A DNA stretch of 64,000 nucleotides, taken from assembly GCF_000315625.1 (NCBI RefSeq), contig NW_005434636.1, forward strand, positions 514,424-578,423. Direction: 5' to 3'. This DNA is from Guillardia theta CCMP2712 (taxonomy: Eukaryota; Protista; Cryptophyta). The translations under genes and the position numbers were made by a program. Numbering within the stretch: position 1 is the stretch's first letter; every line of letters begins with the position of its first letter. Positions 10,901 through 27,466 of the stretch are shown one piece after another. The notes beneath the pieces were generated by a model. The model did no database searches. It was not told the DNA's origin and was given only the letters and a program-made list of their open reading frames with translations.

Positions 10901-13900
10901 TCTCCTGAGAGAGTTTTTGGTAGAGGTGGCAAGGAAGGCTGCATTTCGACCAAGCTCTTGCACCCGATGTACGATTTAGATGACCGCGAAGTGGATAGCC
11001 TGTATCATATTTTGACCAACTTTGTATGTATCATTCCGAAGGCAAGGGCCTTGCCTCCGAGCGCGGTGTTGAGTCATCCAAACCTGAACGAGAATATTGT
11101 GAACGAAGATCGCGTGCTGGATTGCAGACATTGGTTTTCATCATTCAACGATGTCTGCAGACCTGCATATATTCGTCAACAATTGTACTTCCCAGACAAA
11201 AGGTTGTTGCAATACGACTGTGGCAAGCTACAAGTTTTGGATGGAATGTTACGCAAACTCAAGAGCGAAGGTCATCGTGTGTTGTTGTTCACGCAGATGT
11301 CGAAAGTTCTTGATATCTTGGAAACTTTTCTCAGCTTTCACGGACATGTGTACATCAGACTAGATGGCGCAACCAAAATTGAGATGCGTCAGAAGCTTGT
11401 TGAAAGGTTTAACCAGGATCCAAAGATTTTGGTTTTTATCTCGTCGACACGTGCAGGGGGAGTAGGGATAAATCTGACAGGGGCAGATACTGTCATATTT
11501 TACGATAGTGACTGGAATCCTGCTATGGATCGACAAGCGCAAGATCGTTGTCACAGGATTGGGCAGACGAGAGAAGTCAACATCTATCGACTGGTAAGCG
11601 AGAGTACCGTCGAAGAAAACATTCTCAAGAAGGCTCGACAAAAGTTACAACTGGAAAATCTTGCACTGAAAGATGGAGCTGCTAGCCTCTTCAACCCAGA
11701 CATGTTCAAAAAGATTGATGTAAGTACACGCTTACTGCTTTTTGTCTTTCACTTACATCATATGTTACTAACTCATGTTGTAGGTAAGAGAACTATTTGA
11801 GGAAGAGAAGGCCCCTGTAGAACAAGTAGAAACAAATCCCTTGGCACATCTTCAAGCGCAAGAAAGTGCCACTCCTGTCAAGGATTCCAAAGGTGACAAG
11901 GATTCACGAAAGAATGTTCTTAGCGACAAAGAGTGGGAGCTTGCGATTGCAAATGCTGAAGACGAGCAAGACGTTGAGGCCATGAAGATTGCGAAGCAAG
12001 AGGAACGTGAAGAGATGGCTGATTTTGAGGACGAGGCACCAGCTGATGCAGGCGATCGAGATGTTTCTGAAGCGGCGCAAGATGATTTTGGACTTGGCAA
12101 AGTTGAAGCCGTTGCGATGGCAATTGAGAGCGAGCTCATGCCAGTGCAACGATATGCGCTACAATACTTGGAGAACGAGTTCAAGCAGGCAGGAATTACC
12201 CTAGTTGCTGGCGTGAACTTTGACAAGGAGCAATGGGAGAGAGATCAGCTTCGCCGTATTCGTGATCAAGACGCCGATCGCATGTATGATGAAGATGAAA
12301 TCCTCTATTACGAGGTTTCTGGATGCTCACAACAGGTAAAATTATTGGCACTCGAAACTTCCTTACGTTACCGTGGTTTGTGTTTTTTCACACCATTCAC
12401 ATCTGTCATGTTCTGTTTGCTTTGTGATTGTGTCTTCATACGACGAAGGAGCACTCAAGCCTTTGTCCCCTGAGCCCATATTCTTCCAGGTTTATCGTGA
12501 ACTCGTAAATCGCTTGCAGTCAGGGTTTGAGAAATCGAACCTTGACTTCGGTGGTTTTTACGAGCCACCCAATCCCGATGATGACAAGTTCACTTATATC
12601 AACGAACCCATGTACCAGGATACAGGTACGTTTGCATCGCAAATTTGGGAAGCACGGGTTCTTTCGCTGGTGTTCGATGCAATATCTGCAACGGATTCGA
12701 ACTACCCGAATCACCTGTTGCGATGGTTTTCGTTTTCTTTGCACGTCCTGCGAATGAACCTGTGCTCCATTTGTTGCGATGGAAACGGACTGTATCCATG
12801 CATTTTACATGAATTGAATCGTGTGCTTGTTTCACAACACCATTCACACTGTCTTTTATGTTGCTGCTCGTGATATGTGGGCTTGCGTGTGCAGATATTG
12901 ACTGACCTTTGATCTTTGTAGGGGTGAGATCGCCTCAGGGAACCAAGGTAAAGGGTCAGAGACCTGGTCCACCGCAGAACAAAGGGCTCAAGATCAAGTT
13001 CACGATGCCTCAAGCGGTTCAGGCAAACGCACAAGCTTCGGCACGACCAGGGCAGGGCCTGCAGTCTCAACTGAACAAGAAGATGCCGCCAACTCAGCCA
13101 GGACAGCAAGTCAACAAGAACCGAAGAGCAGGCATCTCCGCTGGAGATGTTCCATGGACGAAAGAGGAAGAAGATGTCTTGAGAGAATCTGTCAACCGTT
13201 TTCAGGGTGGCTCTGGTACACTACCCATTCGTACTTGGCATCTGCATGCTTCAATTTTGAACTCCAGTATTCCTGCCAGGGGACGACTCCGCATGGGGAA
13301 GCATTGCATGGACTATTGGCATGCACGGTTATCGACTGCTCAGCAAGGTCAAGGAAATCCTGACGGTCAGCAAAAGCAGCCTTTGTATCCTCCGCGATCA
13401 CAATCGTCAGAACCGACAAGAGACTCGAATATTGCATCCATCATCCGTGCGATGTTGTCTAATACTAAGTCCACTCAGAGTGGCCCCACTTTGCCTGGTG
13501 GAGGAACTTTACCCATGAAGCAGCGGGATTCTCTCCAAGTTCTGCCAGCACACGACTCTCACAGAATGATTGCAAACCAGGCTGCGCAATCTGTCGGCCT
13601 CAACCTTGCAACAGTCTCGAGCAACCCTAGCGAGCTGATTCGACGCATACTAGCAAAGATGCCTCAGCCTGCGCCCTCGCAATCCCAAGTGCAGCAGCAG
13701 CCGTTACAGCAGCAGCAAGCATCTCAGGGGGCTCAACAGTCTTTGCCGGCTTCGCAGCAGCCGGTGCCACCGTCGATCTCACAACAACCTGGAAGCCACC
13801 TCGTCCGTGGTCAACCACAAACATCAGCTGGGCTGGGACAAGGACCTCCCGGGCAGATGCCTGGCAGACCAGGAGCTCATCCATCGCAGCAGGTGCCCGT

Positions 13901-14624
13901 CCGAATGGGTGCGCAGCCGCCTCATCGTCCTGGAGCTCCGGTCGTAAGTGCGTCTGCTGCCTCCAAGGTTGTGGGCGCCGCACATGCCTCGCATGCAGCA
14001 GCCATGCAGGCGTCAAGGCCCATCACGTCGAAGCCTGGCATGCCTCCTACCTCCGCAGGCCCGCCAGTGTCAAGCTCGGTGGTGCTGGGAGGTGTGGGGG
14101 CTCCTTCTCCAATGGCCCATCCGTCAGTGGTGGGGATGCAGCAGGGTGTACGACCAGGGCAACAGAGCCCGATCCCGACGTCAGCAGCTGCGAGGGCAGG
14201 TCAGGGGCCTCCGACAGCCGGACGAGGTCATCCTGTGCATGACCCGACACAGCAATCGAGGCTGCACACTCAGGCGACTCCGCAGCAGCAGCAGGTGGCT
14301 AGACAGGCGGCTCTTGCGCAGCATCAGGCGATCCGAGCCCAGCATACGCCAGTGCCGCACCAGCACCCGCAGCTGTCACAAGCGGATGCGTCGCAGGTGG
14401 GATCCGGTCCTGTGCCGACGGCTCATCATGGCGCGGTCGCGGGGAGGCCAGGAGGCTATCCTCAGCCTCTTCCCCCCTCAGGGTTGATGGGTCAGCATCC
14501 GCCGTCCTCGATGGCGCCGGGAATGCAGCAGCCGATGATGCCGCAACACCCTGCGACGATGGCTCAAAACCGACAGAGAAAGCCGAAGAACGCTCCTGGC
14601 TCGTCACCGCAGAGCAGAAGATGA
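7994..14624 (+). CDS. SWR1: SWR1/SRCAP/PIE1-like Snf2 chromatin remodeller (H2A.Z deposition)
   Basis: HSA domain (HHDYLLEEMTWLATDFRQERKWK), acidic tract, ILADEMGLGKT, DEAH, split ATPase with a long insertion, DSDWNPAMDRQAQDRCHRIGQTR, SANT-like WTKEEEDVLRESV and a Q/P-rich tail; introns 11720-11783, about 12336-12490 and about 12625-12921. Confidence 0.93.
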
Positions 14625-14703: not shown

Positions 14704-17700
14704 TCACACATCCAACAAGCTTCGCTCCATCTCCCACAGCAGCTTCTCGTTCCTCTCTATCAGCTTCTCGTTGGCCTCACACACCTGCTGTGTCCTTGCC
14801 AGCCGAGCCTCCGCCTCCTCCACCTCTTCCTCGAGCTCGTCGATCTCCTTGGCCAGTCTCGCTCCTTGCTCGAAGGCTGATTGAGCTGCAGAGCCGTCAG
14901 CTGCAGGGACTAGCAACCTGCGCGCGCACCTGCTGCGAGCATGATGCCGTCCATGTCTCCCGTGGGAATGCGATCCTCGTGGCTCCCTGCCACCACGTCA
15001 CTTCCTCTTCGTCACCCTCCTTCCTCCCTTCCCTCCCATCTTTCTCTCCCCCTCTCCTCCTCCCCTCCCTCTCTCCTCCCTCCCGTCCCTCTCTCCTCCC
15101 TCTTCTCTTCATCCCACCGAGGGCAAACGCCTGGTGAACATCCTGCGCCATGGGGCCCATGTGAAGCGCCGACTGCCCCTCATAGCGCCAGGTGAAAACA
15201 GGCACGCGCTCGACCAGAGTCTTGAGCACGCGATCCGTGCTGACCTGAGGTAGTAGGGATGAGAAGTGCAAGAGCACGGGAGAAAGACAAGGGAAGGGAG
15301 TGGAAAGACGAAGAGGAGAGGAAAAAAGGAGGAGCACAAGACTAGACCGAAGAACAACGAAGCAGCAATGGTGTGAACAGGAGCAGAACCGGGGAGCAGA
15401 TCGAGAAGAGGAGGAGCGGAGGAGGGGAGGAGGGGAGGAGGGGAGGACTGGCCGATCACCTGAGTTCGATTCCACTTGGACCGCGCGTCTGACAAGGTAG
15501 ACCAGCTGCTGCTCTTGGGGAACAGCTGAGCACCTATCTCCCATCCCGAGGAGCGAACATCACTGACCTGCGCCACTGTCAGTACTCCTCTCAAGCAGCT
15601 GGCGGCAGGGCTGACCATTCGAAACCCTCCGCGCGCTCTAGCCCAGAACGAATCCTGCTTCACGTTGGGGGAGGAGGCGCTGGGGCTGTCAAGGAAGACG
15701 AAGGAGCCGGAGGAGTTGGAGAGCGACGCCAGGTCCCCATCGGTGAAGCTCCCGAGCACAGCTGCCTCCTTCACGGAGACCCTGAGGCTGTGAGCATGCA
15801 CGTGGTACTGCCCGGTGTGGGGGACGAGGCAGTAGGACTGGATGTTGCCGGTGGTGATCACAGTGCCGGAGCTGTCGGGGAAGGAGATCACGTTGGGGTT
15901 GGAGCTGGGAATCATCTCGAAGGCAGTGGAGGGCCTCCCAGCAAGGCTCGACTGGCCCACCTGGTCGTCCGACCCTGAGAAGACGAGGGGGAAGCGGCCC
16001 GTGAGCTGCACGTTCTGGAAGAGAGCGAACTGAGGGTCGTCCCCTAGCTCGCTGTCCCCGAAGAGGATCCTCTCTCCTTGTAGGTTCGCGTCGTTGTGCA
16101 GCTTCAGATCGCCGAGGACCTTGAGGAAGGTCACAGTTTCCGGCAGGTTGCCCGTCGTCAAGATGGTGCCGCTGGTGTCGGGGAGCGTCAGGATGTTGTC
16201 GCTGCTGCTGTCGGAGACGTCGAAGATCAAGTTGAACTCGTCCATCTTGTCGCCTGTGAAGGCGATGGACTGCGCGCTCAGGATGGCGTTGAACTCAACG
16301 TTGACCGCGTTCTCGTCATCGCCGAAGTTGACGAACGCCATGGAGCTGTTGGCATCTCGGGTGAAGGAGGCATGCTCGAAAACGAGCGGCTCGGACGAGA
16401 ACACCTGCGAGTAGAAGGGAGGGAGCGAGCCGCTGCTGAGCACGGTGCCGTGGGCATCAGGCAGAGTCAGGGTGTTGTCCTCCACCGGGTTCACGACCCC
16501 CAGGGTGGTCGCGAAGGAGCCGACGCCTCGAGCTCCGAGCGTCACGGGATAGTCGCCGGAGATGTCGGAGACAAGAGTCACCCACGACTTGTTGGCAGCG
16601 GCAGGGCCGGGGGAGTCGAACATGCCGTAGAGCAGTTCGGGGCCCTCCGGCAGGCTGCCGACCTGCAAGGAGGACGACATGATGCTCGCACTTCCTTCCA
16701 GCGTCACCTGCCCCAGCACGACCCCACGAGGATCGTCCACGTTGATTGTGGGGGAGTCGCTGGTCATGAGGGCGCCGGAGCTGCGGGGGAGACGAAGAAG
16801 GTGGTCGGAGCTGAGCACGCTCTGCCTGACCTCCAGCTGGTGAAACACCCGCGAAGTCGCGGAGGTTTCGGGGAGAAACTTTAGCGGGGAGGAGGTGATG
16901 TCGCCGAGGAGGTCGACTACCGAGACCTCGCCCGCCTCTCCCAGCACAAGATCGCCGCTTACCTCCATGCCGTCGGTGACTTTGACGCTGCTTGCCTGTC
17001 CTGTCTGGTAGGATACGTCCTTGAGATTCCCGGTCGAGATGACCTTGCCGTTTCTCGAGATCAGAGAGATCTCGTTCACGTCGTTCCACTGGGTGACGGG
17101 GAGCCAACCCAAAGCTGCGCACTTGGAGATCATGGCGGACTCGTTGTTATGAGGTTGCCTTACGAGCTTGTCGTCCACGAAGAAGCTGTCCACTCCGTTC
17201 TTGTTCAAGTCGAAGGTCGTGCTGATCCTGCCCGTGTGAAACTCGATCTTGTCGAAAGAAGAGCAGGCGAGAGGGGACGAGCCCAGGACCAGGACCGCAT
17301 GGAAGGGCTGGTCAACGACCTCGAGGTTCGCCACCTCCGTCCAGCCGACCAAGTTGGCGTCGGAGATGACCGCAAGCTCGGTCAGGTTCGCTTGCATTGT
17401 GCCGTTAGACATGGAGAGGCCAAGAACCTTCGATCCCTCCAGAGCTGCGGCGAAGTTGACCCGGGGCAGGACTCGGATGTGCGAGATGGAGGTTGGCGCT
17501 GGCAGCTCAAGGCCCATGAAACAGAAACTCTCCTCTACCCACTTGCTGCTCTCGTTGACCTGAATCTCCATGAAGCGAGACCAAGCCTGTGACGCTGCTG
17601 TGGCAGACATGGACCCGTTCACGTCGAGAGGATTGAACATGGCGGAGACGAACTCGTCGATCGATGGGTCCTGTAGGAACCTGATGTGCATGTTTGACTC

Positions 17701-20700
17701 CACGACCGAACAATTGGAAATAGATCGAGAAAGAACAAGGCCCGACGGCACTGGGTTGCCCGGGATGAAGTCAGTGCAGATGGGGTTTGAGACATCCGCA
17801 ACTTCACTGACGGGAGCTCCTTTGATCGTGTTGAGGAGGTAGGAAGAGTTCAAGCTGCTGTGGTTCAAGTACTTCCAGAGAATCACTGTGCTGGAGGCTG
17901 CGGGGAGAGAAAATGATCCACTCGGACAGACAATCTGGGAGCCTCCTCGCACAGAGCATTGCTCATAGGGGAAGACTGCGAGGACGCTATAATTAGAGAT
18001 TCCCTTGGGAGGATTCAGCCTCATCGTCAGATCGCAAGTCGGACCGAAACTAGCGTGAAAGGTGCCGTTGAAGCCGCGCTGGAACCATCTTCCTTCGAAC
18101 GCGTCGGTGCTGGGCAGCGGCTGGAAGTCAGTCAGGTGCAAGTCAAGTCCCTGCAACCAGCCATCACTCGATCCCAAGTTCAGTTGAGCGCCTCCTTGCA
18201 GCCTCCACTGCCCAGGCACTTTACACTTGCGCATCTTCCTCAGCACTCCCCATGCCGGCGTAGCTTGCAACAGAGTCGGTCGGAGGAGTTGACGATCCTC
18301 CAGGTAGTTGCCCCACGTCTGGAGCCCCCAGGGCCTCCCGTCTCCTTGCATGTCGCACATCTGGAGCTGGGAGCACTGGAAGACAGGAGCGAAGCCGGCT
18401 TGCATGACGAGCTCGTTGCACTTGGAGATGCTGAGGGTTTCTGTTCCATTCAGCGGGTCTCGATACTCCAGCACTGTCGGGGCGTCCACATTGTTCTTCT
18501 CCTGCAGCACGTTGATGGGCAGGTCCTTGGCGCCTGCCGGGTCATTGAGGTAGTAGCGGATCGCCGCATCCTTGCTGTACGTTCGCGCTGGGGAGATGCG
18601 GAGATGATCTTGAGTCCTCTTGCGAATCGCGCACCTTCCCTGCACCGTCGGCGAGAGGGTCCACTTGCCGTAATCTTTCTGCTCCCACTCCTGTGCGAGA
18701 GGAAGGAGAGTGAGGGGGGGGGGAAAGCAAGCAGCAGGGCTCTCACCTCCCAAATCCCAGGGTCTTCTCCTGAGATCTGAGGTCCGGGAAACAGCAGGTC
18801 AGCATCGACGGGGCTCCAGGTCATGTGCCGCATCCTCAACTTGATCGGACGGTCCATCTTGGCGCTCTCGTTGAAGCCGATGCGGTAGCCGATGTACCTG
18901 AGGCCGGAGGTCACTAGAAGGAGAAACTGTGACTTGAACTCACCATCTGCCTTCGCTCGGGTTGTCCTTCGTGTCAAGCTTGTAGGAACTGTCGAGGATG
19001 TTGGCCTGGTAGAATATGTAGACAGGTTTCTCTCTGTGCTTGTACACAGGTTTCCTCGAGAACGTCGAGTGCAGGTCGAATTGCCCCATGAGCTCTGGGA
19101 AAAACACTGCTCCTTCGATGATGACAGACTCGCAGCCGCCGGACGTTCTGAGTACCATCCCAGCATCTCCATCCAGATACGCGTGCATGTGGATCTTTGA
19201 AACGAAGTCGTTGGGGTCCCCGAGCTGCAGGTCTCCTCCGAAGCCGACATGCCCACCTGCACCTAGTCAGACCAAAGGAGAGAGTGAGAGAGCTTACCAG
19301 CATACAACGATCCTGAAGGCAATGCCATCTTTGGGAGTTGGAGCAAGTTTCCAGTTGTTATGATGGTTCCAGAGCAGTCGGGGAAGAGGATGGTGTTGTT
19401 GTTCGTGATGGTCTCGTAGCCGATGGTCGTTGTAATGAGTCCCTGCTTGTCTTGACCAACAAGATCCTTGATGTTGACCCACTCGTCTTGCGGCTGAAAG
19501 AGCTCGAAGTCACAAGCAGCGACGCACTTCGTGTTGTAGAGCTGGAGATGAATGCCTGACGGCTGCTCCCTCCTGACACGATATCGTTCGATCCCATGGC
19601 ACCTGTGCTCACACTTCATGATCTGATCTGCTGGACAGCACCTCGCGTCCACGTCGCAAGGCTGCCCCATGTAAGGTCCTGTGAGACAGACGTAGGAGCT
19701 AACGCATTCTTGGTTGCTCGATGGACAAGACACGCCAGTGGGACAATCACTGATCAAGACATTCTGCATCCAAAGGGACTGGTTGCCTCCTCGGGTCTGC
19801 TTGTTGGAGACCCTGTCAATGATGACGCACATGGAGATTCGCTGAATCTCGTAGTCGATGATCCCAGTGATCTGACCGGAAGGCTTGATCGGGAGCTCGT
19901 AGGGGGACTGATACGCGGGCATCAAGCCAGTGGTCCCATCGTTCTTGGTTGAGTCACGGAAGTTGGACCCTGCGAGCATGTTCATGCTTCCGACGAACCT
20001 GAACTTGTCGCTCAATCTGATCTTGACGGATGACTTCGTCTGCAGCTGAGCAGGGGTCAGGGTGTCCTTGATACCCATGTAGATCATTCCATCCAGGTAC
20101 AGGTTCCGCAGTCTCATCTTCCTGAAAACGATGTCGTCGATGTTGCCGCTCGTGATTACGGTTCCCGTCGCGTCAGGGAATGTGATCCTCCGATTCATGA
20201 CGTCTGCTGGAGGAACATGCGCAAGCGTTTGCGTGTTCGGGAGGTAGTAGTCAGGAAGGCCGCCTTCCTGCACATACAGGCGGCAGCCGATGCAGCTGGT
20301 GACGGAGCATTTCGTGTCAACCGTGAAGGTGTAGTTACTCGCCTTGAACGGGTCCATGAGGTAATCAAGGCCTTGAATGAAGGTGCCAACGTTTGAGAAT
20401 TGAGCTCTGCACGTGTAACCTGATACGGTGAAGCCCAAGGCTGTCCAAAGGCTCGACCCGCTCGCCCAGTTGAAGTTGCTGAAGTCACAGTTGCTCGGTG
20501 GATAATTGGCGAAATGTTTCTTCATGCACCTGTTGAGGCCCGAGTCTTCGAGGCATCTGCTCAGGCTTCCATCGAGTGTCAAGCACTCGTAGGCAGACTG
20601 ATGATGAATCATGATGTCTCCGTTTGGAGCTACATTCTGTATTCCCGGAAACCCTTGAACATCCACAAGATTGCCAGACGTGATCACGGTACCTGATCGT

Positions 20701-23700
20701 TTCCCAGGCATCAGTTGAGAAACATTGGATGAGATATTCCCTATCCCAAAACTGATGCTGTAGTTTCGCAAGTAGAGCAACAGCGAGCTATCTAAGCTTG
20801 AGGGCTTTCCTTGCAGTCTACAGGCATCTGCAGGAGAATATGCTAGGATGCAGGAAACAGATCCATTCACATCCGTCACTCGATACGTCAGGATCCCGCA
20901 CTCCGGCTCCCTTTCGCACGCCTGCTTGCAGACTAGTAGAGACAGTGCTTGCATCCTAACGATCTTGACTGAAGCTTCTCGAACAGTTCCTTTCCTGCGG
21001 ATGACGTTGGGATAGGAGGGGTCAAACTGAACGCTCATGGTGTTGGAAATAACACTGCCAGGCAGGTAACAAATTGAATTCGAGTGATCGCTCCAGGTCA
21101 AGGGAAGACCCGGGCGAAACATGTCCGGGACGTTTCTATAGGTGAGCGAGTCAGGAACAGATCCTTGAAGCAGCACAGGCTTCATGCCACAGAGTCCACC
21201 CGAGGAGCAGTCGAGAGAAGTCACCGTCGCTGCCTCCCACTGGCTGTTGTACGTCGACCACTTGGAGCCGTCTGCTTGACCGTAAACCCCAGGGGGGGGC
21301 CTGTACACGTTGGCGAACGGCGCCATGTTGAGCCCCCCCCCGACAAGAACTTCACCGAAGAGACGGGTCTCACTGCTCACGTTGACAACCTGCCCCGTGA
21401 AGTTCTTGACGTCACGAATGTTGCCGGTGGTGATGATGGTGCTGTTGCATGCGAAGGGCATACTGCCGTCGCACGGGTGGAGGGAGTAAGACCTCCCTGT
21501 GATGTTGCTGTAGGTGTGCGATATGTTGTAACTCTGAGTTCCCCAAACCATCGGGAATTCGATCTGTGCGACCGATCCAGCGCGGGTCAGGAAGGAGACC
21601 CGGGAATCACTGTCGGAAGTGTTGAACAGCATGCCTCGAGGCAATGAGCTCTCTCCGGGCCCAGTCCGCGTGTCGAACATGGTGAACCAAGGGCCGTTGT
21701 TCCACAGCCACTTGGAACCTCCCTCACTCTTCCCCAAGGATGTTCCCTGTGACCACCAAGAGTCTTGAACGTTTTCATCCAGCAGGCTCGAGTAACTTGT
21801 CGAGGGCTCAAGATACCCGACAGTCAAGCCTCGCCTGAAGTAGGAGAGCTGGCTTACACTCAAGCTGTGAAGTGGTCCTGACTCTGCCGTGATGTCTTGC
21901 AGGTTGCCGGTTGTAATGATGATGCCGTTGGTTGAAGGGAAAAGCACATTGTTTTCTGACTGTTTGGAGTCAGACTTGGCAAGAGCTTCAAACTGCAAGA
22001 TTGTCTTATTGCCATCTGTTCCCGACGACAACAAGAACGTGAGATCAGATTTGTGGGAAGCGAAGATGTAAGAGTCCGTGTCTCTGCTATAATTCGCTCC
22101 ACACATCTGAAAATTCACCCGATACGGCGATGACCGCACTCGCGAGCATTCCAAGTCTGTATCAAACCCGAAGTCAAAGACCTGCTGCGCTAGGATCCTG
22201 CTTTGAGTCTGGTTGACCACGTAGAGCTGGTTGTCGGAGAAGGCAAGAAAGGGCTTCTGCCTGCACTTGACCTGCACATTCATCCATAAAGTCTTGGAAG
22301 GACAAGTCTTCCACAGGTTTGAGTCCAGCGAGTACAGGGCTCGTCTGGCAGAGATGGAGCACGAGGTCTTGCCAATGCAGGAGATGAAATTCCCGTCCGT
22401 CGTCTTGCGCGTCCCAGCCAGCCATGGGGCAAGATCAACATCGCACGGGTGAGCAGTATACTCGCCGCAGAGGCCTCCAGTCTGTAAGAAGAGATGTCAG
22501 CGGTCAAGAACAGAGGCACTTCAGCAATTCATGATGACAACAAGGAAAGCAGTCGGATCGAGTGCACATTCGGCCTCAGAAAGTGTATGGATAACAGGAT
22601 GTGACTTACATTGCCCATCCTTGCGTATGAAAATTCTGTAATTTCTCCTCCAACTCCGCAAGACAGTGTTTTTGTTTCATTTTCATGTAGCTCTGCGCAA
22701 ACTCCCTGGTGCTGAAGGGAAAATCCATTCACCGATGCCGATTCTGATTTTGCAATGGACCACAAGTGTGGGTTCACGTCGTATACATTGGGACTACCAT
22801 AAGCAAAGGTGTTCAAGTTTGCCAAGCTCCTCACCTCAAGGGACTGGTTTGTGTAGTTGGAGCAATCAGCAGTGGTTAAGTTGGCGTTGCAATTCACATC
22901 GATCAAGATTTGCAAAGCATCAAGCTGCTTCTGATACATTTCAAGGATAAGTGGAATAAGATCAGGCCCCCCCGCAAGATAATTCCTTTGACCATAACTC
23001 TGAAAGAATGCTAGACAGCCGGGTAGCAGAGTGCCATTCAGGTGAGAATCTCGACTGTCACTTACTGAACATCCCGTCCTGAACATTTTCCATCTGTTGA
23101 AGTGAAGCGATCCGTCAGAGGGAGGCAGAGCTTGAGAGGTGGAATATGAAGGAATCAAGAAGCCGCCGCTCGACAACGAAACCAGGTTGAAACGAGAAGC
23201 CCAGATCAAGGAACAGCTCTGATCCTTGCATGATCGAAAGCACTGGGACAAATTGGAGACCGTCAAGTTCAAGCAAAAAGTTCCGAAGTCGGACTTGTAG
23301 CACTTGGAGTCAAGACTTGTGAGGTTCAAGTTCTGCAGAGACTGGAGTGGCTCTGTGATGAGGTTGGAGCACTGCGATTTTAAGCTTGTGTTCCATCCCA
23401 GGAGGAAGTCGTTGGACCTCAACTGGAATCCAGAGTTGAGCAAGTGGTCTTTATCGTTGCAATCCGTCCAATTGCATTCCCCCGCGTGCGAGCCTGATCC
23501 GAACTGAAGCCACCCGTAAACCTGTAGGTTGCTGTTGACTTGCAGTCCGGTAGCCTGTCCATACTCCAGCAAGACGTCCTCCAGGTTCCCTGTCGTCAGA
23601 AGGATACCATCCTGCACCGGCACACGCAGCGAGTTCCTGAGCTTCGGAGGAGTAGGCGTGCCCTTCCTTGGGGAGAGGTCAGCGCGTACTTGAGGGGAGT

Positions 23701-26700: not shown

Positions 26701-27466
26701 GAGACATACGCAGCACAGATGGAGAAGCAGCTCGAGCAAGTGAGTTGGTCGGCTACTCACCGTGGTGGCATCTTGAGATCGTTGGCAGCTCATTTGACCC
26801 GACATCCCGCAAGGGTTACCACACTGATCCATCACAGGATGATTGCACTGAGTAGTAGCGACATTGAGGATGCACTGCCTGACATTGAGACCCTGTCCTG
26901 TCTGGTGACAAGACCTGAGCAAAGAGGGGCAGAGGGTCAGCAAGTCTCGAGCAAGGTCATCAAGGGTTACCTGTCGCATCGGTTCAGTACTGGGATTCCA
27001 CACCTGTCGGATGACTCAGCACAGCTCTAGGCAGGGATCGCGGCTGCTCACGGGACACTGTCGAGGTTCAGATTGCATCCCAGGTCGCAGAAGATCAGGG
27101 GCCTCCAGTCGTTCACCCCGTCGCAGGCCTCGAAGGCAGGCTGCTGGCCTGATACCGGCGGGGTTCCCCAGCGAATGGCTCCCTTACGAGAGGGGTTGCA
27201 TCTGAGTGATCCAACGGGTGTGCTCACAGCAAGACCTGAAGTTGGTCTCCGTCAGATCCAGGAACAACAAGCCGATGGCGCTCACCATAAATCTCGAAGT
27301 TCTTTTCTATGCGGACACCAGCTTGAGCCAGAAATTCTTCCTCGATGGAATACCCCTCTCTGCTCAACGTAACGTATGGAGCAGAGGGGAAGACGGATGA
27401 CAGTAGGAAAAGAAGTAGCAAGGAATCATGAGAAGAGAGCTTATGACGGCTCGAGAAGAACATCAT
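14704..27466 (-). CDS. Giant (about 3,900 aa) fibre-like protein: tail-fibre-like repeats, SUEL lectin, PAN-like and discoidin-like modules, C-terminal peptidase S74 chaperone
   Basis: ORF segments 27224-27532, 26578-27003, 26193-26669, 25560-26132, 23958-25523, 22529-23989, 19263-22283, 18940-19188, 15109-18753, 14897-15544 and 14704-14916 join in frame through canonical GT-AG introns checked by hand. The PDxSGTIITTGN motif recurs throughout; the C-terminus reads WSTLSDARSK...WRY...HMGPMAQDVHQAFAL...DMDGIMLAA. Start codon is tentative. Confidence 0.8.

Follow-up and report, generated by a model that had tools for sequence, protein, structure and literature searches.

The last kilobase of a giant fibre gene in the cryptophyte Guillardia theta appears to encode a self-cleaving chaperone of bacterial type that is broken up by introns. 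The gene lies in a stretch of 64,000 nucleotides from strain CCMP2712 (contig NW_005434636.1, positions 514,424 to 578,423), here called the window, and positions given without a contig name are positions in it. It runs on the minus strand from about 27466 to 14704 (~12.7 kb). Its 3' end (14704-15720, minus) codes for the C-terminal ~190 residues of the fibre protein, which comprise a pre-ICA block, a Peptidase_S74/ICA domain and a terminal coiled coil. It is likely that an old horizontal transfer into the eukaryotic lineage provided a secreted fibre with this bacterial-type chaperone, and that the gene has since been intronised.

The S74/ICA module and its catalytic residues

The searches used single exons, paralogues and homologues, and the Pfam profile PF13884 was scored exon by exon. 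Exon 3 alone matches this profile over profile positions 19-53 with 26.9 bits (E 5.9e-6; cut-off, 22), and a six-frame scan of the species' own genome assembly (87,145,349 bases in 669 pieces) gave the same exon 3 match with 24.8 bits. Complete homologues reach 23-36 bits, also past the cut-off. A search of the Protein Atlas returned bacterial S74 clusters only, and a word-based protein search gave four matches within its length window.

An earlier note on this DNA had described an intact S74 domain of the ICA type with catalytic residues at about 15475-15492, and both statements agree with what was found. By direct reading of exon 2, the putative catalytic serine (codon 15490-15492) is followed five residues downstream by a lysine (codon 15475-15477) in the motif S-D-A-R-S-K (15475-15492, minus). 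The spacing is that of SDLRAK in MYRF, the latter being visible as an ADLRAK construct in the structure 7dc3. The surrounding residues were compared in a 37-row alignment of uninterrupted homologues in which the window exons form separate rows (alignment A7). The lysine, the tryptophan before the SD motif, a second tryptophan, a histidine and the GP of GP.AQ are invariant in these 37 rows, and at least 90% of the rows retain the serine, the aspartate, a tyrosine and the AQ. The W..LSD...K columns are nearly invariant both in this alignment and in a further one (A5).

The S74 domain is the last module of the fibre protein and is followed by a helical tail. The last exon gives weak coiled-coil Pfam matches and aligns to the terminal long helix of the homologues, with the same end column. 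Directly upstream of the ICA domain stands the pre-ICA block, GSFVFLDS...FWARARGG. No Pfam domain was found in the 1098 residues of the window protein upstream. Taken together, the profile match on exon 3, the retained dyad and the coiled coil confirm, at the level of the predicted protein, an intact S74/ICA domain with its Ser-Lys dyad at the C-terminus of the fibre.

Exons, introns and the repeat shaft

An open reading frame (ORF) of 1214 residues (18753-15109, minus) enters the module region; beyond it, shorter open stretches lie in other frames. The pieces can be joined as follows, all on the minus strand. The end of a long exon (exon A, 15616-15720) carries the pre-ICA block as GSFVFLDS...FWARARGGFRM, which aligns with GSFV(F/W).D...N.F.VRA.GG of eukaryote-type and bacterial homologues. 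Intron 1 (15568-15615, 48 nucleotides, GTCAGC...GCGCAG) is in phase 0, in frame and free of stop codons. Exon 2 (15460-15567) holds, by direct translation, the end of the pre-ICA block and the start of the ICA domain; it reads ...WSTLSDARSKWNRTQ and ends ...STLSDARSKWNRTQ. Intron 2 (15245-15459, 215 nucleotides, GTGATC...CCTCAG) is frame-shifting and consists of CT-rich simple sequence. Exon 3 (15118-15244) is the Peptidase_S74 core recognized by PF13884, VSTDRV...W.Y...HMGPMAQDVHQAFAL, and ends with ...GPMAQDVHQAFAL and the first base of a glycine codon. Intron 3 (14987-15117, 131 nucleotides, GTGGGA...TGGCAG) is in phase 1 and made of GA-rich simple sequence. Exon 4 (14930-14986), SHEDRIPTGDMDGIMLAA, supplies the D..G....AA part of the ICA domain and aligns to the conserved D.DGVALAA. 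Intron 4 (14886-14929, 44 nucleotides, GTGCGC...CTGCAG) is in phase 1 and has a 29-nucleotide alternative with its acceptor at 14901. The last exon (14704-14885) encodes the coiled-coil helix of ~59 residues, with coding sequence at 14885-14707 and the stop codon at 14706-14704.

The exon structure is supported by register. When each exon piece is set as a row of its own against the 37 uninterrupted homologues, the pieces follow one another in order and exactly to the column, without gap or overlap. The end of exon 2 and the start of exon 3 fall in adjacent columns, and the end column of the fibre protein is that of its relatives. Removal of introns 2, 3 and 4 is needed in each case to hold the reading frame. 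If intron 4 is not removed, a stop codon follows six codons past ...MLAA, and its 44-nucleotide form keeps the conserved glutamine of AA.QG in register, whereas the 29-nucleotide form shifts it out. Removal of intron 3 joins FALG to SHEDRIP, and both paralogues (see below) are continuous at this site; at the site of intron 2 the paralogue L005 has no intron. All four introns start with GT and end with CAG. Introns of G. theta have a mode of 47 nucleotides and a mean of 106 nucleotides (assembly of 87.1 Mb, 669 scaffolds, GC 52.9%; PMC6260743), so that sizes of 48, 44, 131 and 215 nucleotides are ordinary for this genome. The four introns are thus probably spliced as modelled.

The first intron carries the most doubt. 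The gene would have three introns and not four if these 48 nucleotides were a translated loop insertion of 16 residues: they read through in frame without a stop, their donor GTCAGC is weak, and bacterial homologues such as P0019 have an insertion in the same loop. Since some bacterial relatives carry such an insertion, a minor but real chance is given to translation. On the other hand, the segment is bounded exactly by GT...CAG and has the modal intron size of the genome. Both paralogues and every eukaryote-type homologue lack its 16 codons, and its excision restores the exact length seen in all of these proteins. The translated loop is therefore considered unlikely. Of the four spliceosomal introns claimed in the earlier note, the last three stand by their tiling with the homologues, and the first stands with this reservation.

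The whole locus might also be a decaying or silent relic, whose exons look intact yet are unspliced or unexpressed as modelled. The non-consensus donor sites and the simple-sequence tracts in the introns would fit such a state. Against it, the coding sequence is open over ~12.7 kb in long exons, each exon of the module is in register with the homologues, the catalytic and nearly invariant residues are retained, the acceptors are all CAG and the intron sizes are typical of the genome. A relic is accordingly regarded as very improbable, and a functional, spliced gene is preferred.

An introner origin was considered for introns 2 and 3 and was rejected. Both are simple sequence of the GGAGG/CCTCC type with dozens of partial matches in the genome; these matches are CT/GA simple sequence and never full-length copies, so the two introns do not belong to a discrete introner family.

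The fibre gene has relatives in its own genome. At least three such genes are present, the window gene and the paralogues L005 (G000:C51:442862-446494) and L004 (G000:C61:107825-111385), and both paralogues have the same pre-ICA block and ICA domain. Their introns lie elsewhere. In L005 the segment from GSFLFVDS to GPMAQ is a single open frame, with an intron right after GPMAQ and a further one ~8 residues past the position of window intron 4. In L004 introns stand before WSVLSD, after ...RLVLQ, before VRHMGPMAQ and after ...VDIDG, all with GTGAG donors and CAG acceptors. None of the four window introns is shared with either paralogue, which suggests that introns were gained (or many of them lost) once the genes had duplicated.

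Upstream of the module, the same open frame continues into the shaft (15721-18753, minus; part of the 1214-residue ORF). Repeats ending in (F/L)PD.SGT..T.GN can be followed over 15721-22496 (minus). These repeats share unit and register with the tail-fibre repeats of marine tailed phages, with a BLASTP E-value of 2e-12 to L185:1150-3552. The marine phage ORFs with shaft-type repeats match tail-fibre families in PHROG; the window shaft itself has no PHROG match. Because of this agreement in unit and register, the shaft as well as the chaperone looks phage-derived. More broadly, each half of the protein seems to be of prokaryotic-viral or bacterial origin, since the shaft resembles phage tail fibres and the module resembles bacterial proteins. 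Shaft and module together were found on no phage or bacterial ORF among those inspected.

The probable gene start (27377-27466, minus) encodes a signal-peptide-like N-terminus, a hydrophobic leader followed by '..L(S/T)K.GY', as in the homologues P0022 and P0186. No transmembrane segment was found in the seven homologues checked, and from its leader the fibre protein is predicted to be secreted. The gene is surrounded by host-like DNA of 59-62% GC with eukaryote-like neighbouring genes on a large scaffold. Next to its 3' end, an ORF of 571 residues rich in glutamine and proline (12909-14624, plus) converges on the fibre gene and ends 80 nucleotides from its stop codon.

Kinship and origin of the module

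A profile built from the window gene, the paralogues and exon pieces was scored against 1.84 billion representative proteins and matched 1721 of them at E<=1e-3. About 25 of these cover the whole profile and share the fibre architecture, among them ORFs on metagenome contigs that run uninterrupted for 2819 to 5233 residues. The remaining matches cover profile positions from ~45 onward (pre-ICA block and ICA domain) and have YadA/UspA-like head repeats upstream. Among the matches is MFO7740887.1, a 'tail fiber domain-containing protein' from an Anaerolineae metagenome-assembled genome, and hundreds of proteins with a bacterial-type module score at E 1e-20 to 1e-9. The resemblance of the upstream GSFV.DS/RARGG block to bacterial proteins of this name, which had been suggested in the earlier note, is borne out, as the block is common to them.

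The same picture emerges from a scan of prokaryotes with one genome per species, for which alignment A6, narrower than A5, was used. At least 427 bacterial and archaeal loci are 46-62% identical to the ICA domain of a eukaryote-type homologue. They span Chloroflexota, Planctomycetota, Acidobacteriota, Verrucomicrobiota, Proteobacteria, Myxococcota, Nitrospinota, cyanobacteria and a few archaea. With the profile of this subtype, E-values of the bacterial loci are 1e-25 to 1e-30, against 0.21 for MYRF. In a pairwise comparison, the eukaryote-type homologue P0006 and P0061, a metagenome protein of bacterial architecture, are 44% identical over 180 residues (E 4e-46). Among the viral contigs of IMG/VR the ICA subtype occurs on 84, and the full module of pre-ICA block and ICA domain on L094 alone; L094 has a phage-type integrase, and the next-best contig, L095, has portal, terminase and head-protease genes. 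The assignment to a bacterial or phage type made in the earlier note is thus upheld, and sequence comparison supports membership of the module in the bacterial type and not in the MYRF type.

On the IMG/VR contigs L096-L149, many phage proteins carry an ICA domain of the HIGPMAQDF type without a pre-ICA block, after low-complexity sequence rich in glutamine and glycine. The subtype may serve another purpose here, in proteins of the virion.

Vertical inheritance was weighed against these results. The gene could in principle descend from a membrane-bound transcription factor with an ICA domain of MYRF type, and MYRF is the solved structure closest to the model of a homologue. However, no NDT80-type DNA-binding domain and no other Pfam domain is found upstream of the ICA domain. 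No transmembrane segment follows it: the protein ends in a coiled coil at 14707, and the homologues show no hydrophobic segment. MYRF itself has no pre-ICA block. As MYRF matches the subtype profile at no better than E 0.21, the module does not group with it, and descent from a MYRF-type gene is given almost no weight.

Contamination with bacterial DNA or a misassembly of the algal genome would account for the strong similarity of the module to bacterial proteins. Nevertheless, GT...CAG introns lie inside the domain, the flanking genes on the large scaffold are eukaryote-like, and the three paralogues are dispersed, each with introns of its own. An artefact of this kind can practically be dismissed. 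Relatives of the module gene also occur on other eukaryote-like contigs. In P0001, a relative from a metagenome (contig L010, GC 58%), the module lies downstream and has an intron of its own; the window shaft is 28% identical to P0001 over 659 residues. For the uninterrupted giant relatives, no poly(A) was found at the contig ends, and the neighbouring genes gave only EF-hand or lectin matches. One family member (P0017/P0200, on L011 and L012) has an EF-hand inserted in the fibre; its metagenome contig is poor in introns, and a second giant protein with an EF-hand is encoded next to it.

A maximum-likelihood tree built from 168 module sequences unites 23 eukaryote-type rows, including both window pieces and both paralogues, in one clade. 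Monophyly of the eukaryote-type sequences rests on the SH-aLRT value of 88 for these 23 rows.

A eukaryotic virus could have been the donor, in place of a direct transfer from bacteria or phage. According to this proposal, the gene was acquired from a polinton-like virus, a virophage or a giant virus with an S74-ended fibre and was then domesticated. Very long modular fibres capped by S74 are known from polinton-like viruses of cryptophytes, where the fibres reach 3.9k residues with S74 at the C-terminus (PMC12220804). In the papers searched, S74-capped fibres were described only for these viruses of cryptophytes and not for host genes. Moreover, an element on C94 of the same genome encodes a fibre of 990 residues with Gly_rich_2 and S74. 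Its S74 domain shows no similarity to P0006, which is of the host-gene type (E 1.7), and is nearer to MYRF (E 6e-6), whereas the host-type module is 44-62% identical to bacterial proteins. The single IMG/VR contig with the full module has a phage-type integrase, and the next-best one has portal and terminase genes. The fibre gene is not in an AT-rich, intronless viral island beside viral core genes: its DNA has the host-like GC content given above, and it has introns and eukaryote-like neighbours. Acquisition through such a virus is therefore held to be improbable, and transfer of the bacterial-type module into the eukaryotic lineage remains the preferred account.

The C94 element deserves mention in its own right. 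It is a ~23-kb island (G000:C94:190000-213000; L197, L199, L198, L001) with 30-45% GC, against 53% for the host, and intronless ORFs. It encodes a Prim-Pol/PriCT/D5-type primase-helicase, and its 990-residue fibre consists of Gly_rich_2, a full Peptidase_S74 domain (64 bits) and then a coiled coil. The island has the appearance of a polinton-like virus or virophage that has integrated. The S74 domain of its fibre is of the MYRF/phage type and is unrelated in sequence to those of the host fibre genes.

The transfer is placed long ago because at least three diverged paralogues exist, GC content and intron sizes are host-like, and introns stand at paralogue-specific positions. The earlier note had proposed an old acquisition that was later intronised. 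The paralogues with differing introns and the host-like GC agree with this, but the acquisition is not a lone one, as the gene belongs to a family. We infer both the direction and the age of the transfer; the immediate donor may have been a bacterium, a phage or another eukaryote. Because the dyad is intact, identity to bacterial proteins is up to ~60% and introns were probably gained separately in each paralogue, the family would document prokaryote-to-eukaryote transfer and later intron gain in a clean and datable form.

Fold models, proposed assembly and known systems

Structural models were made for residues 155-355 of the homologue P0006 and not for the window protein. The AF2 model of this segment has a pLDDT of 93.5, with the terminal helix at residues 133-200. 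The best Foldseek matches are MYRF (7dc3), endoNF (3gw6) and GA-1 (3gud), with weak E-values of 0.02-0.4; for 7dc3 the probability is 1.0 and the TM value 0.56. Comparison with 7dc3 by VIA gave Z 5.9 and a root-mean-square deviation of 3.2 Å over 108 aligned residues, a Z tied with plain long-helix matches, and such matches also dominated the wide VIA search. Since the VIA score does not rise above that of plain helices, the fold comparison is suggestive only. A three-copy model of the same segment scored 0.86, against 0.21 for the best control, with contacts agreeing to at least 93% across runs and a pLDDT of at least 84. Among proteins of known structure, that mark was attained by 21 of 30 solved as pairs of one chain and by none of 23 solved as single chains; P0006 may have passed because the model remembers solved ICA trimers.

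This possible memory effect is one of several points that weigh against a transferred, intronised and working fibre chaperone. The fold and trimer modelling concerns a homologue that is ~40-60% identical to the window protein. Pieces of the window protein have no PHROG or NCBIfam match, and PDB sequence searches with exon 3 and with the paralogue L005 gave nothing meaningful. The tree is poorly resolved, with 84 of 165 branches open, and the long-branch fibre-type row P0022 falls outside the eukaryote-type clade. That the uninterrupted relatives from metagenomes belong to eukaryotes is a presumption. Lastly, the donors GTCAGC, GTGATC, GTGGGA and GTGCGC are weaker than the GTGAG donors of the paralogue L004, and intron 1 is in frame within an insertion-tolerant loop.

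The mechanism of ICA domains is established for phage tailspikes and tail fibres of the endosialidase type, and by analogy the following pathway may be proposed for the fibre protein. Three chains would come together by way of the ICA domain and its coiled coil, and the trimerised domain would nucleate and template the folding of the trimeric shaft upstream. The serine, activated by the lysine five residues on, would then cut the chain at S-D-A-R-S-K. Cleavage would free a chaperone fragment of ~132 residues, and the remaining trimer would form a stable secreted fibre. Trimerisation and self-cleavage of the fibre protein are thus expected from its relatives. As to history, the module may have entered the eukaryotic lineage horizontally, duplicated, taken on the GC content of the host and gained introns at positions specific to each paralogue.

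A wider proposal is more tentative. In cryptophytes, and probably in planktonic eukaryotes of other groups, a whole fibre assembly line in the style of prokaryotic viruses may have been turned to the making of a secreted structural fibre, a possibility that we hold as doubtful. The domesticated line would consist of a repeat shaft of the phage tail-fibre type and a self-cleaving chaperone of bacterial pre-ICA/ICA type. The cell might use such a fibre for surface fibrils or flagellar hairs, or as a decoy for viruses. The finding thus points to an extracellular cryptophyte fibre that is predicted from genes. It changes nothing in the working mechanism of ICA domains, and the fibre gene joins a known domain family.

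The closest known systems are the bacterial 'tail fiber domain-containing proteins', which are alike over the whole C-terminal module at 44-62% identity. The common motifs are GSFV(W/F).DS...N.F.VRA.GG, S-D-x-x-x-K, W.Y, RHMGPMAQDF, D.DGVALAAIQGL and the terminal coiled coil. The bacterial proteins have YadA/UspA-like head repeats at the N-terminus, whereas the window protein has PD.SGT..T.GN repeats instead. Unlike them, the fibre protein has a shaft of ~4000 residues behind a predicted signal peptide, encoded by a gene with spliceosomal introns. The fibres of marine tailed phages (IMG/VR contigs L176-L196) are alike in the repeat unit, FEG...T.L...P....I.(F/L)PD.(S/T)GT.ITTGN. The ORFs inspected (L176, L180, L185 and others) differ at the C-terminus, where they have other domains and not the ICA module.

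The ICA domains of phages (endoNF C-terminal domain, 3gw6; GA-1 neck appendage, 3gud) likewise stand at the C-terminus of a trimeric fibre and have the Ser-Lys dyad, and they are among the best, though weak, fold matches of the homologue model. They differ in having no detectable pairwise sequence similarity to the fibre module and no pre-ICA block. The fibres of polinton-like and giant viruses share great length, modular build, an S74 end and association with protists. They differ in that they lie in AT-rich, intronless islands, and the copy on C94 is of a different S74 subtype.

To our knowledge, MYRF is the only characterised ICA protein of cellular eukaryotes, and in it the domain has been re-purposed to release a transcription factor. 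MYRF/MrfA (7dc3) resembles the fibre gene in being a eukaryotic nuclear gene with an ICA domain and S-D-x-R-x-K, and among solved structures it comes nearest to the homologue model. In MYRF an NDT80 domain precedes the ICA domain and a transmembrane segment follows it, as befits a membrane-anchored transcription factor, whereas the fibre protein is predicted to be secreted and ends at its coiled coil; sequence kinship between the two is marginal. The fibre gene and its relatives are eukaryotic nuclear genes in which the ICA domain would keep its original setting, capping a giant fibre that is predicted to be secreted. Under the wider proposal above, they would represent a second eukaryotic recruitment of the domain, independent of MYRF, in which the ancestral role in fibre folding was kept.

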